Sequence record: PQ390715.1
DNA: 64,000 nt
Direction: 5' to 3' (one strand)
Part shown: one piece after another, positions 580-18,816 of the stretch
How the letters are laid out: every line of letters begins with the position of its first letter
How positions within the stretch are numbered: the stretch's first letter is position 1
Made by a program: the position numbers and the translations under genes
The notes under the pieces: generated by a model
Database searches by the model: none
Told to the model about the DNA's origin: nothing
The model's input: only the letters and a program-made list of their open reading frames with translations

Positions 580-1368
580 TTAAATGTTAGTAGTATAGTA
601 CTTGATTTCGTTTTGAATTGCAAGTTCTATTTGTTTATTGAAAAGAATTCCAAACTCTTTGATTGATTCACAATCGAATTCAATAGAAAAAGTATACTCT
701 GGTATACGTACATTGTCAATACCCAAATACTCTTTTATGTAAATTTTAATGAGTTCACATAGTGCAGTACTAAGACATTGAATTTCAAAATGTTTTGCAC
801 CTTTGTCAAAATACTTGAATGCATCAATATCACCTACAATAAAACTATTCTTTAATGTAGTGAATAGGTTCTCAGGAAACACGGTAATAGGTGACATTGA
901 TTTAAGAATGTATGTATCTTTGGCATTCTTAATGTACTCAATGAAGCAGTAGTTAACGTCAGGCTCGATTGAACGATCCGCGTTATGATACCAGTGTTTA
1001 AACTCACTGTATTCAGCAAACTTATGCTGGCGTAATGCGTTACAATCTTCACACAGTGCAGTCATGTTCTCTTTATCATTACCGCCCTGAAGACAGTCAA
1101 GTACATTATGGTCTAACGTCATGCGTACAAGGCGTTTCCCTTTAAGTACATAAGGTCTGAATTTATAACGTTCTTTAGTACTGTGCTTATGTAAAGTGAA
1201 TACCACATTGGATTCACCACAACAATCACATTTAAAGCCATCACGTGACATTACATGAATGAGTTTTCGAGTATTTGGACCAAACTCTGATTTGGTAATG
1301 TTACCTACAATTTCTGATGGTTGGTAATATTTTGAATTCCGTCGAATCAGTTCATCTATAGTGCTCAT
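580..1368 (-). CDS. HNH endonuclease-domain protein
   Basis: CDCC zinc knuckle, then TLDHNVLDCLQGGNDKENMTALCEDCN (HNH/His-Me motif). Confidence 0.8.
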   Translation of the reverse strand: MSTIDELIRRNSKYYQPSEIVGNITKSEFGPNTRKLIHVMSRDGFKCDCCGESNVVFTLHKHSTKERYKFRPYVLKGKRLVRMTLDHNVLDCLQGGNDKENMTALCEDCNALRQHKFAEYSEFKHWYHNADRSIEPDVNYCFIEYIKNAKDTYILKSMSPITVFPENLFTTLKNSFIVGDIDAFKYFDKGAKHFEIQCLSTALCELIKIYIKEYLGIDNVRIPEYTFSIEFDCESIKEFGILFNKQIELAIQNEIKYYTTNI

Positions 1369-1870: not shown

Positions 1871-1899
1871 ATTCTACGCGAATGATTAATAACTGTCAA
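1871..1899 (-). promoter_or_regulatory. sigma70-type promoter
   Basis: TTGACA-17 nt-TAGAAT on minus strand. Confidence 0.8.
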
Positions 1900-1904
1900 G
1901 GACT

Positions 1905-2390
1905 TTTAATATTGACGGGATTTGAGGAAGGGATTTTTCTTCCCCCCCACAAGGAGGGAAATTTGACGCTGATGGTATCAGAGCTATTGCATTGAAGATT
2001 ACTCATAACGAGTGCGAAAGCGGGTCATCCTGTTTCTCTCTACTTCAGTTTCATATGACGGTCTACACTTTTAAACATAGTGTATCTTCATTAAGTATCT
2101 ATGCAATCAAATACTTAATGTGAGTACTCAAATTTTGGACGCAACTTTCCTGTACAAAATTCGATAACTCTCCCTTAGATAATTCGTAAGGTGTTATCCT
2201 TATATGTCTATCAAGGAACCACCAGCTATCCTAACGTGGTTCTTTATACAGCCGCATTGCCGTGAGGGGTTCAAACTATGCCCACATCTAACGGGTTTCT
2301 TTTGCTGTTCGCACTGTCGGACTGCTCAACTGCCCTCTACGTTTTCGAGTGGATCAGGTACATGAATATCATGCCAACAGAATTGTACAA
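1905..2390 (-). ncRNA. candidate ~480-nt structured non-coding RNA
   Basis: No ORF >=60 aa; own extended -10 (TGATATAAT, 2395-2403) just after the sigma-gene terminator; many stems, e.g. GAACCAC/GTGGTTC 2216-2242, GATAAC/GTTATC 2163-2198, ATTAAGTAT/ATACTTAAT 2090-2119, TACACT/AGTGTA 2064-2084. Confidence 0.55.
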
Positions 2391-2424
2391 GATAATTATA
2401 TCACAAACTTTTACTTCATCCCAT

Positions 2425-2452
2425 AAAAAAAGGTTGGCATAAGCCAACCCTT
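2425..2452 (-). terminator. intrinsic terminator of sigma gene
   Basis: GGTTGGC-ttat-GCCAACC then T7 on minus strand. Confidence 0.85.
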
Positions 2453-2457
2453 GTTCT

Positions 2458-3423
2458 TTAGAAATCTTCGTATTCGTACCCTTTTGCAAGTACTAACTTC
2501 TTAAGCTTTTGCATAGCTTCACTGTACTTTCGGTGTATTGATGAACGGGATTTAACATATTTTCCATTATCATCAACAAAACCATTATCAGCAATCTCAC
2601 GAAGCGTTTCAGGTTCATATTCACCTAGACCATGAACACGCTGGATAATCTCACGTTCTTTAGTACTCAATTCGTTAGTTAGTTCATTGATAGCATAACG
2701 TAAAGGTGCACGGATACTATCAACATTGAGGTTAAAATCAGAAGCAGGTGAATGAATAATGTCACCTAATGTACCATCTGTAACACCGTCTAATGGTGCA
2801 TCCAGTGAAGTGTATTCGCTTTGAAATAATAAACAATTATTAACATGCTGAATCTCAATCCCAGTACCCTCTGAGATTATTTCAGGTGTTGGGCGAACAC
2901 CATGTTTACGCATATATTCCTGGCAGAATCTTTTTACTTTGATCTTATGAACACTCATATAACGTGGGAAGTGTACCATATAGTTAGCGTCAGAACTTTC
3001 GTTATAGACTGTCATGTAAATACTAGAAGAAGCATAGGTAATGAACTTAACATTCTTATTAAGATCAAAGGTTTTTAGTGCTCTCATGAACCCCTCAACA
3101 CCATATGAAATCTTATCTTCAAATGGGATATAACAAGTACATTTACTTGCTACATCAATAATCAGTCCATAATTGTAACGAACTAACAGTTCAGTGTTTT
3201 TCTTTACATTGATACCAGCTTGAATATCACGAATTAGATCTTCATTGGAAACATTTGGTGGTCGCTTAAGTGTAATATTATATTTGAAACTGCTTTGTAC
3301 TTTACCTTCATTATCATCTTTATCTTCAACGAAATCTAAGGCTTCTAGTGTGTTGACTTCTTCATTAGCAAAACATTCATCCAGAACTTCTTCGGCAATT
3401 GTATTTAAATCAAGCTTTTTCAC
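2458..3423 (-). CDS. RNA polymerase sigma70-family (RpoD/RpoS-like) sigma factor
   Basis: Region 2 FDLNKNVKFITYA; region 4 EREIIQRVHGL..ETLREIA HTH. Confidence 0.85.
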   Translation of the reverse strand: MKKLDLNTIAEEVLDECFANEEVNTLEALDFVEDKDDNEGKVQSSFKYNITLKRPPNVSNEDLIRDIQAGINVKKNTELLVRYNYGLIIDVASKCTCYIPFEDKISYGVEGFMRALKTFDLNKNVKFITYASSSIYMTVYNESSDANYMVHFPRYMSVHKIKVKRFCQEYMRKHGVRPTPEIISEGTGIEIQHVNNCLLFQSEYTSLDAPLDGVTDGTLGDIIHSPASDFNLNVDSIRAPLRYAINELTNELSTKEREIIQRVHGLGEYEPETLREIADNGFVDDNGKYVKSRSSIHRKYSEAMQKLKKLVLAKGYEYEDF

Positions 3424-14699: not shown

Positions 14700-14789
<90 letters not shown>

Positions 14790-14810
14790 AGAAGTAAGAT
14801 AACCAACAAG

Positions 14811-14902
<92 letters not shown>

Positions 14903-14954
14903 GCCAAGAGTCGGCATAGGTGCAGCACTACAAAGTTCTTCAAGCTGCTTGGTA

Positions 14955-14986
<32 letters not shown>

Positions 14987-14987
14987 T

Positions 14988-15044
<57 letters not shown>

Positions 15045-15046
15045 TA

Positions 15047-16279
<1,233 letters not shown>

Positions 16280-16292
16280 TATATCATGTGAA

Positions 16293-17157
<865 letters not shown>

Positions 17158-17165
17158 CTTTTTTT

Positions 17166-17327
<162 letters not shown>

Positions 17328-17331
<4 letters not shown>

Positions 17332-17492
17332 GTTCGTACCATTATTTCAATAAAGAACCACGGATACGCTTCATGGTTTATAAGTTTATCGTATTCTGCT
17401 GGGTCTGACATGATTTCCCAATGATACTTTCTCCAGTTACCGAAACCTGCATATCTAAAATTAATGTCATTCATCCATTCTTCATGCGTCAT
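17328..17492 (-). CDS. MTHEEW-family 54-aa protein (not in ORF track)
   Basis: MTHEEWMNDINFRYAGFG...HWEIM...PWFFIEIMVRT. Confidence 0.75.
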
Positions 17493-17516
17493 GGTTTTTT
17501 AACCTTTAATTAAAAT

Positions 17517-17598
<82 letters not shown>

Positions 17599-17602
17599 AT
17601 TT

Positions 17603-17718
<116 letters not shown>

Positions 17719-17735
17719 ATGTGATGTCCCATTAT

Positions 17736-18008
17736 TTATGATTCAGTTTGAGGATTAAATTTGATAAATTCATCTTTATGTTCATCTTCAAACGCAATAT
17801 CTTCTACGTATTCAGGCCAAATCGTAGTGTCTCCTTGATAAAAGCGATAATTATCAAATACTGCACTACGCGTTCTTCCCTGTTCCCAGCCAATCGTACA
17901 GTCATGATATACATCCCCACTACTTGTACGAATACTAATGGTGTCTTGAGTTTCATAAAGAACTTCAATGCGTGTGTTACGATTTACGTTGAATTTTTCA
18001 AAATGCAT
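17736..18008 (-). CDS. hypothetical protein
   Basis: ORF with GAGG RBS. Confidence 0.7.
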   Translation of the reverse strand: MHFEKFNVNRNTRIEVLYETQDTISIRTSSGDVYHDCTIGWEQGRTRSAVFDNYRFYQGDTTIWPEYVEDIAFEDEHKDEFIKFNPQTES

Positions 18009-18061
18009 AATATTATCCTCATCTAGAACCAGTGATAATCATTATATAATGAATTAATGAT

Positions 18062-18280
18062 TTATGCAAGTGTTTTAGATACACCGACACCAATAATTCC
18101 AGTGATATCGATATGGATATTGGCAAGTTGATTACTATCATATGGGTTTGTTTCTGTAATAACCAATGTTGTATCATTGACTAAAACCACAGTACCTTTT
18201 ACACGATAACCATGTAGTAGTACTTGAACCTCATCTTCAGGTTTTAATGATTGAATAACTTCAAATAAAGTTGTTTCCAT
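18062..18280 (-). CDS. possible Sm/LSm-fold protein (probable start at METTLFEV)
   Basis: EVQVLLHGYRVKGTVVLVNDTTLVI...IHIDITGIIGV resembles Sm1/Sm2 beta pattern. Confidence 0.45.
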   Translation of the reverse strand: METTLFEVIQSLKPEDEVQVLLHGYRVKGTVVLVNDTTLVITETNPYDSNQLANIHIDITGIIGVGVSKTLA

Positions 18281-18296
18281 TTTTTGTATTCCTTGT

Positions 18297-18480
18297 TTAG
18301 TTTTGATTATTTGACTTTCTAAATGCCAGTTCGCATATAAACCAGGGTTTTCTGGTATCCAAAACATATGACCTGAAAAGATTTTCATCTCTTAATATAT
18401 CATAATGTACCTGACGAATGCCATTCCCAAAGCAGTCATGTTCTTTATGCTGTTTGGACATCCATTCTTCGTGTGTCATT

Positions 18481-18497
<17 letters not shown>
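18297..18497 (-). CDS. MTHEEW-family protein
   Basis: MTHEEWMSK..FGNGIRQVHYDILRD..PWFICELAFR. Confidence 0.75.

Positions 18498-18816
<319 letters not shown>

Follow-up and report, generated by a model that had tools for sequence, protein, structure and literature searches.

A candidate family of large structured non-coding RNAs present in several copies in Rak2-like jumbo phages

The window analyzed here is the whole stretch of 64,000 nucleotides taken from sequence record PQ390715.1, and its source is Escherichia phage SHEFM2K, a 121Q/PBECO4-like Asteriusvirus. We focused on a gap between genes that are carried on the minus strand. The features in and around this gap are as follows (coordinates of the window, strand in brackets).

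2458-3423 (-): sigma-factor gene, just upstream of the RNA gene
2452-2429 (-): intrinsic terminator of the sigma-factor gene, a 10-bp stem with 5 GC pairs followed by a U-run
2403-2395 (-): extended -10 promoter TGATATAAT, recognized by its sequence and without a good -35
2388-1906 (-): body (about 480 nt) of the putative gene for a structured RNA, the A copy among four paralogues, delimited by family profile and covariation
1899-1871 (-): sigma70-like promoter TTGACA-17-TAGAAT, 11 of 12 matches
1882-1852 (-): downstream hairpin UUCGC-..ACGUAGUA..-GCGAA, a degenerate version of the hairpin with loop AACGNAGUGA that follows many copies

The gap without ORFs (2390-1906, minus strand) that was described in the first-pass annotation is real, with the sigma-gene terminator and the extended -10 before it and the sigma70-like promoter after it, and the longest ORF between these two promoters does not exceed 54 aa. 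The terminator isolates the RNA gene from transcription coming from upstream, and the transcript would start near 2388-2386. The promoter at 1899-1871 is predicted to serve the ORFs 1806-1597 and 1600-1370 and the HNH gene at 1368-580. The gap had also been described as richer in GC than its flanks, and this difference is modest, with 0.385-0.44 in 200-nt windows over 1801-2400 versus 0.30-0.35 over 1401-1900.

BLAST with copy A as the query returned 257 places in 62 records, and copy B returned 284 places in 71 phage records. Each Asteriusvirus genome contains four paralogous copies (A-D), found as four co-oriented places within one complete genome, while BLAST finds three to five places in each of BF, GAP32, CBB and the Yersinia and Munch-type phages. 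This multi-copy nature (3-5 places per genome in the 71 phage records) had been overlooked in the first-pass annotation. The carriers are jumbo phages of E. coli, Salmonella, Klebsiella, Erwinia and Serratia, such as 121Q, PBECO4, phAPEC6, G17, RaK2-type phages, BF, GAP32 and CBB. We then searched with a family profile by nhmmer, which gave 60 matches among the fetched loci; the matches in bacterial assemblies were only two MAG contigs, labelled Buttiauxella and Enterobacteriaceae. About 240 loci were collected from genome and metagenome collections with a degenerate 17-base pattern; these were mostly chance hits and were filtered by the family profile. Judged from sequence, the family does not extend beyond Rak2-like jumbo phages. 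Every copy lies between genes, both of which are complete, and TGnTATAAT is also found upstream of the paralogues B, C and D, standing before the terminator of the upstream gene at copy B.

The copy in the window matches the family profile at 2367-1895 (E = 4.8e-134) and the core covariance model R1 with 96.5 bits (E = 2.7e-17; 3' core, 1993-2063). No second copy was found inside the window by blastn at word size 7 or by the covariance model with filters off; the paralogues of copy A sit elsewhere in the genome, outside the window. The family signature consists of the blocks GAAAAYGUAG, UGAG, AAACCCGU, CGGCAAUGCGGC, GAUAGACAUAUAAGG, UAAGGGAG, GACCGU, GAAAC...ACCCGCUU and a CGUCA tail.

The locus bears no annotated gene in most of the matched records, and a few records call small ORFs there. 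In the SHEFM2K record, PHANOTATE called four CDS of 36-53 aa in the gap, and close relatives share a Cys/His-rich peptide (..PHCRE..) on the opposite strand. That the gap encodes small proteins is nevertheless extremely improbable. None of the four CDS belongs to a PHROG family, the frame across the most conserved block varies between members with stops in all six frames, and most indel lengths are not divisible by three (modulo 3: 380 of remainder 1, 105 of remainder 2 and 51 of remainder 0). Moreover, the compensatory changes described below are explained by RNA pairing rather than by codons. No coding frame is conserved, and the small ORFs called across the locus in a few genomes are probably spurious. 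A weak hint of expression comes from three RNA libraries, in which DNA is possible, whose contigs cover 2032-2330, 1822-1973 together with 2095-2245, and 1927-2212 of the element. The libraries are two wastewater metatranscriptomes and one whole-organism metagenome, and the runs had been picked by words from the element region.

The first-pass annotation had also pointed to many stems. From one sequence these are not above chance, because the folding energy is no better than that of shuffles (z = -0.94 for the RNA strand and -1.74 for the opposite strand), and single-sequence folding energy is evidence neither way. The stems become credible only through comparison with relatives, and here the claim holds. 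The consensus obtained from 39 non-redundant members has about 20 helices, heavy compensatory change and two pseudoknots. Covariation was tested against shuffles and column slides, and covariance models were built on sub-alignments. Over the 107 pairs of the 39 sequences, 91.5% are canonical versus 77.1 +/- 0.35% in shuffles, the covariation score reaches 0.419 versus 0.168, and canonical pairing drops to 39-43% if the partners are shifted by 1-3 columns. RNAalifold on 21 sequences gave compensated changes at 46 of 73 pairs. In the covariance-model sub-alignment of 47 members (P9-P11), 98.7% of the cells are paired versus 81.8% in shuffles, none of 500 shuffles reaches the observed value, and both sides have changed in 9 of the 13 pairs. 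As for the strand, the alignment contains 347 G-U cells and is 91.5% paired, versus 84.8% on the reverse complement. The orientation of promoter and terminator agrees, which places the RNA on the minus strand.

All the family helices P1-P11, PK1 and PK2 map onto the copy in the window, where the helices and motifs are placed as follows.

2372-2360 (-): P0, 5' hairpin CAUGA-UAU-UCAUG just 5' of the conserved core, judged by eye and unscored
2357-2330 (-): P1 (2357-2355/2332-2330 and 2352-2347/2337-2333), enclosing the conserved loop GAAAAYGUAG
2328-2311 (-): invariant (A/U)UGAG, then P2 hairpin (2325-2321/2315-2311), from covariation
2308-2248 (-): P3 domain, 2308-2304/2252-2248 enclosing 2294-2291/2263-2260, with three covarying pairs in the outer helix
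2242-2216 (-): P4 hairpin (2242-2237/2221-2216, GAACCA/UGGUUC), 3-5 pair types at all six pairs
2215-2187 (-): invariant GAUAGACAUAUAAGG and P5 hairpin (2202-2199/2190-2187), from the alignment and the covariation table
2174-2122 (-): invariant UAAGGGAG, then P6 (2170-2166/2126-2122), 3-6 pair types
2120-2089 (-): P7, 13-bp hairpin (2120-2108/2101-2089), from covariation
2084-2064 (-): P8 hairpin (2084-2081/2068-2064), from the covariation table
2063-1993 (-): pseudoknotted 3' core with invariant GACCGU, PK2 and P9-P11, from covariation and model R1
2059-2055 (GUCAU) with 2028-2024 (AUGAC) (-): PK2, 5 pairs within the 3' core
2047-2043/1997-1993 (-): P9, in the 3' core
2040-2036/2020-2016 (-): P10 (GAGAG/CUUUC), with invariant GAAAC and ACCCGCUU
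2014-2011/2003-2000 (-): P11, in the 3' core
1991-1986 (-): 3' strand of PK1, UGCAAU, 6 pairs with the P7 loop 2107-2102
1981-1965 (-): invariant AUCA(G/U)CGUCA region with a short local helix in two registers, neither of which covariation settles
1960-1937 (-): 3' G+C-rich hairpin UUCCCUCC-UUGU-GGGGGGGAA, from the covariation table
1929-1906 (-): conserved 3' tail CUCAAAUCCCGUCAAUAUUAAAAG, from the alignment

Most members have a hairpin of other sequence, often with a GAAA loop, at the place of P0. The inner helix of P1 shows 3-4 pair types per pair with 85-97% canonical, and one pair of the P2 region (59-72) is CG in 11 members, UA in 17 and AU in 11. In the P3 domain AAACCCGU and CACGGCAAUGCGGC are invariant and the tip is variable. 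P4 has the highest mean covariation among the helices (0.86). P6 bears a module of about 35 nt, UUUUGUACAGGAAAGUUGCGUCCAAAAUUUGAG, inserted at 2160-2130, which is found at the tip of a different helix in other members. The loop of P7 (2107-2102, AUUGCA) is the 5' strand of PK1, which is 99.6% canonical with covariation at all six pairs, each changed on both sides, a pattern that fits pairing within or between molecules alike. PK2 is canonical in all 39 members at its five pairs, three of which vary. The 3' tail at 1929-1906 may pair over a long range with 2328-2326 and 2174-2171, where the columns are invariant. The alignment shows a conserved sequence and a conserved pseudoknotted fold built around strictly conserved unpaired stretches.

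Three structural details proposed earlier need revision in this map. Between 2380-2389 and 2151-2162 a long-range pairing of 7 bp can be drawn; it is absent from the consensus structure, and its 5' partner sits in a leader that is not conserved among copies. The palindrome TGAGTACTCA (2121-2130) does not form a hairpin of its own; its half 2126-2122 is the 3' strand of the conserved helix with 2170-2166. The promoter at 1899-1871 had been taken as the boundary of the element, and the two in fact overlap, since the conserved element reaches about 1906 and probably extends to the hairpin at 1882-1852, which itself overlaps the promoter. For 27 of 59 copies, the motif of the AACGNAGUGA loop follows within 250 nt, mostly at a distance of 18-78 nt (about 0.015 per copy by chance). 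The hairpin at 1882-1852 may be a 3' extension of the element. The motif AACGWAGTGA is not enriched across the window (12 found versus 9.1 expected), and is enriched only downstream of family copies. A promoter of the "TGAAACG" class has been reported for CBB and GAP32 (PMC5259590). The 3' G+C-rich segment is not a general promoter motif of this kind, because it is present in the genome only at the four copies.

No intrinsic terminator was found between 2390 and 1300, and the 3' end of copy A is therefore not set by the sequence; this copy may represent the 5' portion of a longer transcript, which would require processing. In about 22 of the 39 members the conserved 3' hairpin is preceded by a terminator-like hairpin and a U-run. 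Such a terminator would sever the conserved tail and is hard to square with a single mature RNA, and strong conservation persists 3' of it.

These observations bear on the alternative that the element works in cis as a leader, in the manner of a giant riboswitch or attenuator whose structured domain responds to a signal and governs read-through into the downstream genes (here the ORFs 1806-1370 and the HNH gene). The copies A, B and D do show the order of promoter, structured domain and co-oriented genes, with the terminator-like hairpin after the structured domain in those about 22 members; at the copy in the window read-through into the downstream ORFs is likely, because the terminator is absent. 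However, this copy and 16 others of the 39 members have no terminator hairpin, and the downstream ORFs already have their separate sigma70 promoter at 1899-1871. Moreover, the genes downstream differ from lineage to lineage, and downstream of the C lineage more than 1 kb passes without a co-oriented gene. In 121Q this lineage lies between minus-strand genes, those of endonuclease VII and of the baseplate-hub operon, and it is flanked likewise in about 8 loci of other genera. Since the C lineage lies between opposite-strand genes in several genera, the element looks like an independent gene instead of a leader. Known bacterial leaders are, to our knowledge, far smaller than this element of 450-550 nt. 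We consider the leader explanation unlikely.

No adjacent protein common to all the lineages was found. The B and C lineages are syntenic across genera, whereas A and D have no conserved synteny outside Asteriusvirus. Copy A is followed at 540 nt by an HNH gene, and copy D is preceded at about 0.9 kb by another; their products resemble each other weakly (37% over 51 aa). It could be argued from this that the RNA belongs to a mobile or nuclease-associated element, serving the HNH protein as a guide or omega-like RNA or forming a cassette of the intron or homing type, and homing-type events may have helped to spread A and D, as both are without synteny outside the genus. In the flanks examined, however, neither B and C nor the copies of other genera showed a nuclease gene that recurs. 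A Pfam search with the 262-aa HNH protein gave no domain at E up to 0.01; the protein lacks a RuvC domain and is therefore not IscB. The link to the HNH gene, left open in the first-pass annotation, is unsupported; HNH genes are nearby for only two Asteriusvirus copies and are for this reason not a functional signature of the family. The resemblance to HEARO and the omega RNA of IscB, an HNH gene less than 1 kb from a structured RNA, is thus limited to copies A and D, and the family differs from them by the absence of a HEARO match, of RuvC in the HNH protein and of a nearby nuclease for most copies. Group I and group II introns gave no covariance-model match, and the copies interrupt no host gene; terminal repeats were not seen. 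A nuclease-linked origin is accordingly a very improbable explanation.

We then compared the family with known RNAs. With gathering thresholds, Rfam cmscan found only tRNAs in the whole window, and relaxed searches, with E up to 10 for 1500-2800 and up to 5 for nine other members, gave terminator-like noise. Ten family members were thus checked against Rfam 15, and no model matched, including those of RNase P RNA, tmRNA, 6S RNA and T-box; ARAGORN found no tmRNA, and no prior description of this RNA family was found in the searchable literature. Three local likenesses were rejected. The 5' region, CAGAUGAG followed by hairpin P2 and CG.., recalls the hammerhead core CUGAUGAG-stem II-CGAAAC; the U4 position is A, the equivalents of A13 and A14 vary, there is no stem I and Rfam gives no match. 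The stretch ACAGAGCAACCCGCUU presumably recalls CR-V of RNase P only locally, as no model score stands behind the likeness and Rfam again gives no match. A group I-like reading of local motifs falls in the same way, with no match in Rfam.

ROOL and GOLLD are large ornate RNAs that are often found in phages or prophages, frequently beside tRNA genes. The new RNA resembles them in being phage-encoded, longer than 400 nt and pseudoknotted, with many invariant unpaired nucleotides, and in being untied to any one neighboring protein gene. Unlike them, it matches no Rfam model, is smaller (about 480 nt), belongs to phages of Enterobacterales hosts and has 4-5 diverged paralogues per genome. The tRNA nearest to copy A is about 12 kb off (the window tRNAs lie at 14.7-18.8 kb), and none is annotated around copies B, C and D of 121Q within the fetched sequence of at least 3.8 kb per side. 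By cryo-EM, ROOL and GOLLD form RNA-only homo-oligomeric cages (PMC12286853). In PA5oct, a Pseudomonas jumbo phage distantly related to Rak2-like phages, RNA-seq defined four ncRNAs, one of 451 nt, and two are highly expressed throughout infection with up to about 5% of phage reads (PMC7318152). The likeness, four loci without ORFs in a related jumbo phage, is one in kind and does not imply homology; the comparison covered the region of ncRNA001 and ncRNA002, with ncRNA003 and ncRNA004 outside it, and neither nhmmer --max nor the core covariance model with filters off found a match there.

ColE1 RNA II and the transcripts at T4 oriF and oriG prime replication. Like these, the element is a promoter-driven structured RNA of about 0.5 kb at several dispersed loci, and it might be a replication-origin module, an alternative also listed in the first-pass annotation, in which the structured RNA serves as a primer through an R-loop and starts DNA synthesis at several origins. 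This would suit the four to five dispersed co-oriented copies, each with a promoter, in a T4-related genome of 350 kb, as well as the AT-rich sequence after the conserved tail (e.g. about 180 nt after copy C). On the other hand, no sign of origin function was found, and the conserved tertiary architecture of the element goes far beyond that of those transcripts; pseudoknots and invariant unpaired stretches across genera exceed the known needs of a primer. Neither iterons nor repeated boxes were found, and no replication gene is consistently adjacent. The cumulative GC skew tracks the direction of the genes; apart from C, which lies at an orientation switch, none of the copies coincides with a feature of the skew, and the skew is uninformative as origin evidence. 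An origin function is therefore rather improbable, even more so than a leader.

The proposal of an independent large ncRNA is thus upheld by covariation, by the lack of a conserved frame and by the lack of an Rfam match, and the family looks like a new class of large phage RNA because it is multi-copy, conserved and folded and matches no known family. The reading that we favor, with moderate confidence, is that 2388-1906 on the minus strand is the gene for a structured ncRNA of about 480 nt, from an undescribed family of Rak2-like phages, which serves as a trans-acting scaffold. The host sigma70 RNA polymerase would transcribe it early from the extended -10 after the sigma-gene terminator, and the RNA would fold into a compact core locked by PK1 (through the P7 loop) and PK2 (GUCAU/AUGAC). 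The folded RNA might then act in trans as a stable scaffold, which binds one or more phage or host proteins or self-assembles like ROOL and GOLLD, probably for host take-over or counter-defence, and it would be neither a cis leader for its neighbors nor a partner of the HNH gene. The scaffold role of the putative RNA is suggested by analogy. More tentatively, the family may be a new functional class with an activity of its own, kept by E. coli jumbo phages as 4-5 long-lived paralogues and used early in infection for host take-over or counter-defence. Such an activity could be that of a ribozyme, or of an RNA-only multimer with PK1 as the intermolecular kissing contact.

Large folded RNAs of bacteria and phages, of the kind of OLE, GOLLD, ROOL and raiA, are rare, and each of them opened new RNA biology. 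Of the more than 70 deposited genomes, most leave this RNA locus unannotated. The phages are cultivable, and expression, knock-out, pull-down and cryo-EM work is therefore feasible at once. Even with an ordinary function, the family merits inclusion in Rfam and a correction of the genome annotations. That four to five diverged paralogues have been retained, with synteny across genera for two of these, is unusual among phage ncRNAs and points to a strong and possibly sub-divided selection.

Region 1500-2800 of the window is 100% identical to 125500-126800 of Escherichia phage SHEFM2K (PQ390715.1) and 97-99% identical to 121Q, PBECO4, phAPEC6, G17, Sharanji and other Asteriusvirus jumbo phages. 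The local genes run on the minus strand, with the following features.

Features around the gap
2458-3423 (-), RpoD-like sigma factor gene with Pfam regions 2, 3 and 4
2452-2429 (-), intrinsic terminator of the sigma gene
2403-2395 (-), extended -10 box TGATATAAT, read from the sequence
1899-1871 (-), sigma70-like site TTGACA-17-TAGAAT, 11/12 matches
1806-1597 (-), small ORF after the gap
1600-1370 (-), second small ORF after the gap
1368-580 (-), 262-aa protein annotated in the record as HNH endonuclease

The terminator, extended -10 box and promoter with which the first-pass annotation had bounded the gap are all present in the sequence, and its description of the gap as ORF-free and more GC-rich than the flanks also stands: the longest ORF is at most 54 aa, and GC content is 0.385-0.44 vs 0.30-0.35 downstream. 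Across the RNA gene (PQ390715.1 125882-126447, window 1882-2447) the SHEFM2K record annotates four hypothetical CDS, 36-53 aa long and lying on both strands; these PHANOTATE calls have no PHROG family and are probably spurious. Other phage records mostly leave the locus without annotation, and UE-S1 labels part of it repeat_region. The family argues against translated small ORFs, the alternative raised at first pass. ORFs of 25-90 aa arise mechanically in its members, but even over the most conserved block the frame varies from one member to another, and inter-member indel lengths are mostly not multiples of three (modulo 3: class 1, 380; class 2, 105; class 0, 51). Elsewhere in the window, a tRNA gene cluster lies at 14710-18794 (-), where ARAGORN finds six tRNAs (Thr-TGT, Asn-GTT, Met-CAT, Ser-ACT, Ser-TGA and Gly-TCC); Rfam also finds six, with an extra weak one at 17520-17598 (30.7 bits) and the Gly at 18722-18794 missed. 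The long-arm tRNA with anticodon ACT, read as Ser, is unusual.

Searching 50,697 phage records with the gap by BLAST, we matched 62 records at 3-5 places each, including jumbo phages of Erwinia, Serratia, Pectobacterium, Cronobacter, Yersinia, Salmonella, Klebsiella and Xanthomonas at about 70% identity; mostly no annotated feature underlies the matches. One complete unannotated Asteriusvirus record, OR844650.1, was assembled and contains four co-oriented copies, at about 18.5, 128.6, 208.3 and 261.7 kb. Besides copy A, no second copy was found within the window by word-7 blastn or by the covariance model with filters off.

Copies in 121Q
90270-90809, copy A, after the sigma gene gp167
192842-193315, copy B, between gp415 and gp416
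247510-248045, copy D, between gp515 and gp517
326680-327147, copy C, between the endonuclease VII gene gp594 and gp595

With copy B as query, 71 records matched at 284 places, ten Klebsiella phages among them. Scanning IMG/VR, GTDB genomes and JGI metagenomes by pattern and then filtering with the family profile yielded 60 family hits, of which only two came from bacterial assemblies, both MAG contigs (labelled Buttiauxella and Enterobacteriaceae). At copy B (121Q NC_025447.1 192760-192830; 3760-3810 of fetched locus L031), the TGATATAAT box stands before the strong terminator of the upstream gene (AAGGUGAC...GUCACCUUUUUUU), not after it, which makes it a doubtful promoter for copy B.

When the flanking ORFs of all loci were clustered, lineages B and C were found to hold their positions across genera: B is flanked by the gp415 and gp416 homologues, and C lies between a minus-strand endonuclease VII gene and a minus-strand small ORF with the baseplate hub gene. 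The flanks of copy A match Asteriusvirus loci only. The downstream genes vary from lineage to lineage, and no protein family among the clustered ORFs accompanies every lineage. Both neighbours of the RNA in the C lineage are on the other strand, and more than 1 kb after it is free of co-oriented genes. This arrangement of neighbouring and downstream genes favours a gene acting in trans over a leader. In a FastTree phylogeny of 39 members the paralogue lineages group across genera, and Asteriusvirus copies A, C and D cluster together. Since by synteny 121Q copy C is orthologous to the endonuclease VII/baseplate-hub copies of GAP32- and BF-type phages but clusters by sequence with A and D, gene conversion or recent duplication among paralogues is suggested.

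The first-pass annotation had seen many stems in the single sequence. However, its fold is no better than that of dinucleotide shuffles (z = -0.94 on the RNA strand, -1.74 on the other), so these stems are not above chance for the sequence alone. Comparison among members gives a different picture. RNAalifold predicted 73 pairs from 21 members, 46 with compensatory changes, and the consensus of 39 non-redundant members (alignment A2) has about 20 helices; scanning all columns against all for covariation revealed two further elements, both pseudoknots. In PK1 the loop of the 13-bp hairpin P7 pairs with a single-stranded stretch that lies about 110 nt further downstream (in the window, AUUGCA 2107-2102 with UGCAAU 1991-1986, minus strand); canonical pairing is 99.6%, with changes on both sides at all 6 pairs. 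PK2, pairing GUUGC with GCAAC, crosses helices P9 and P10 (in the window, GUCAU 2059-2055 with AUGAC 2028-2024, minus strand); it is canonical in 39/39 members, and 3 pairs vary.

Over 107 pairs in the 39 members, 91.5% of cells are canonical, against 77.1 +/- 0.35% (maximum 78.0%) in 300 within-column shuffles, and the covariation score reaches 0.419, compared with 0.168 (maximum 0.18) for the shuffles. As an independent check, 47 members were aligned to R1, a covariance model of the 3' core with 117 positions; 98.7% of cells are paired (81.8 +/- 0.9% in shuffles), the score is 0.563 (0.219 in shuffles), 9 of 13 pairs changed on both sides, and 0/500 shuffles attain the observed pairing or score. 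These shuffle figures are not p-values, because shuffles ignore phylogeny. Controls with slid partners retain phylogeny, yet pairing collapses: to 39-43% with a score of 0.07-0.11 when the 3' partners of the 107 pairs are moved by 1-3 columns, and to 35-62% of cells in the R1 alignment. Judged from this comparative evidence, the gap element is a structured RNA. The structure contains 347 G-U cells, and pairing falls from 91.5% to 84.8% in the reverse complement; promoters, terminators and the co-orientation of all copies are likewise consistent with the window minus strand as the RNA strand.

Anatomy of the window copy, 5' to 3' on the minus strand
2403-2395 (-), promoter, with a putative start near 2388
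2372-2360 (-), P0 hairpin
2357-2330 (-), P1 around the conserved loop GAAAAYGUAG
2325-2311 (-), P2, preceded by an invariant UGAG
2308-2248 (-), P3 domain with AAACCCGU and CACGGCAAUGCGGC
2242-2216 (-), P4, the best-covarying helix
2202-2187 (-), P5, with GAUAGACAUAUAAGG
2170-2122 (-), P6, with UAAGGGAG
2160-2130 (-), module of about 35 nt on P6
2120-2089 (-), P7 with the PK1 loop
2084-2064 (-), P8
2063-1993 (-), PK2/P9/P10/P11 core with invariant GACCGU, GAAAC and ACCCGCUU
1991-1986 (-), PK1 3' strand
1981-1965 (-), AUCAGCGUCA region
1960-1937 (-), G+C-rich hairpin
ending near 1906 (-), conserved tail

Two particular features picked out at first pass look different in this fold. The long-range pair 2380-2389/2151-2162 can be drawn but lies outside the consensus, its 5' partner being in a leader unconserved among the copies, and the palindrome at 2121-2130 forms no hairpin, one half of it being the 3' strand of the conserved helix P6. 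The module of about 35 nt (UUUUGUACA..GAAAG..GCGUCCAAAAUUUGAG) is carried by P6 or by P11, depending on the member, and copy D (fetched locus L259) has it twice, once on each of these helices; within the RNA it acts like a structural unit able to transpose, e.g. a receptor or protein-binding site.

The 3' end is the main difficulty. A terminator-like hairpin with a U-run lies between CGUCA and the G+C hairpin, before the conserved tail, in about 22 of the 39 members and is absent from the window copy, which has no terminator. Within the genome, the hairpin-plus-tail segment is confined to the four copies; it is therefore part of the element, and we rejected it as a general promoter. A hairpin with covarying stems and the conserved loop AACGNAGUGA follows the tail within 250 nt, mostly at a distance of 18-78 nt, in 27 of 59 copies (examples are fetched loci L003:2975-3010, L133 and L056). 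Its degenerate counterpart in the window, 1882-1852 (-), overlaps the sigma70-like promoter, and elsewhere in the window the motif shows no enrichment (12 found vs 9.1 expected). Possible readings of this hairpin are a 3' extension, a site of processing and a site of protein binding.

No transcriptome of a Rak2-like phage was found in the searchable literature besides that of the distantly related PA5oct. Public RNA runs support expression weakly: one wastewater metatranscriptome gave a single 299-nt contig at 2032-2330, a second gave two (1822-1973 and 2095-2245), an RNA run from a whole-organism metagenome gave a contig at 1927-2212 and a piece of another paralogue, and a fourth run (wastewater library) gave part of the sigma gene only. 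The runs were picked by words from 1700-2700 and may contain DNA; 5 of the 6 pieces within this region lie on the element, which is not significant (roughly p = 0.09, our estimate).

Rfam 15 contains no family matching the window copy (E up to 10) or nine further members (E up to 5). Locally the element resembles the hammerhead core and RNase P CR-V, but both likenesses fail at the defining positions. Closest in kind are ROOL and GOLLD, large ornate phage-associated RNAs (PMC12286853), but the family shares no homology with them, has no adjacent tRNA genes in the window or at the 121Q copies and differs in size. RNA-seq has defined four ncRNAs in PA5oct (PMC7318152); one is 451 nt long, and two are highly expressed. 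Our comparison covered ncRNA001 and ncRNA002 (MK797984.1 8263-8498 and 21951-22401; fetched locus L034) and showed no detectable similarity in sequence or structure. HNH genes occur near copies A and D only, the two Asteriusvirus-specific copies. Both are free-standing and within 1 kb (window 580-1368 (-) and 121Q gp513, 246019-246630), their proteins are weakly similar (37% over 51 aa), and the window protein lacks both a Pfam hit and a RuvC domain. A HEARO/IscB-type RNA-protein pair was thus rejected; at most, homing-type events may have helped to place these two copies.

We found no prior description of the family in the searchable literature. The first-pass proposal of an independent large ncRNA, possibly of a new class, stands, considerably strengthened by the multi-copy family, its covarying pseudoknotted fold and the absence of an Rfam 15 match. 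The family of large structured RNAs is real and apparently undescribed, with one of its four genomic copies in the window. The PK1 sequence types differ among the four paralogues of one genome (UUGCA, UCAUAU, UUGUA and UCGAA), which would fit a paralogue-specific intermolecular contact, and is equally well explained by ordinary compensated drift. From the conserved pseudoknotted fold, the many invariant unpaired nucleotides, the multiple long-retained paralogues and the independence of neighbouring genes, we infer that the RNA, probably transcribed early by the host RNAP, would act in trans as a scaffold, either protein-binding or self-assembling.
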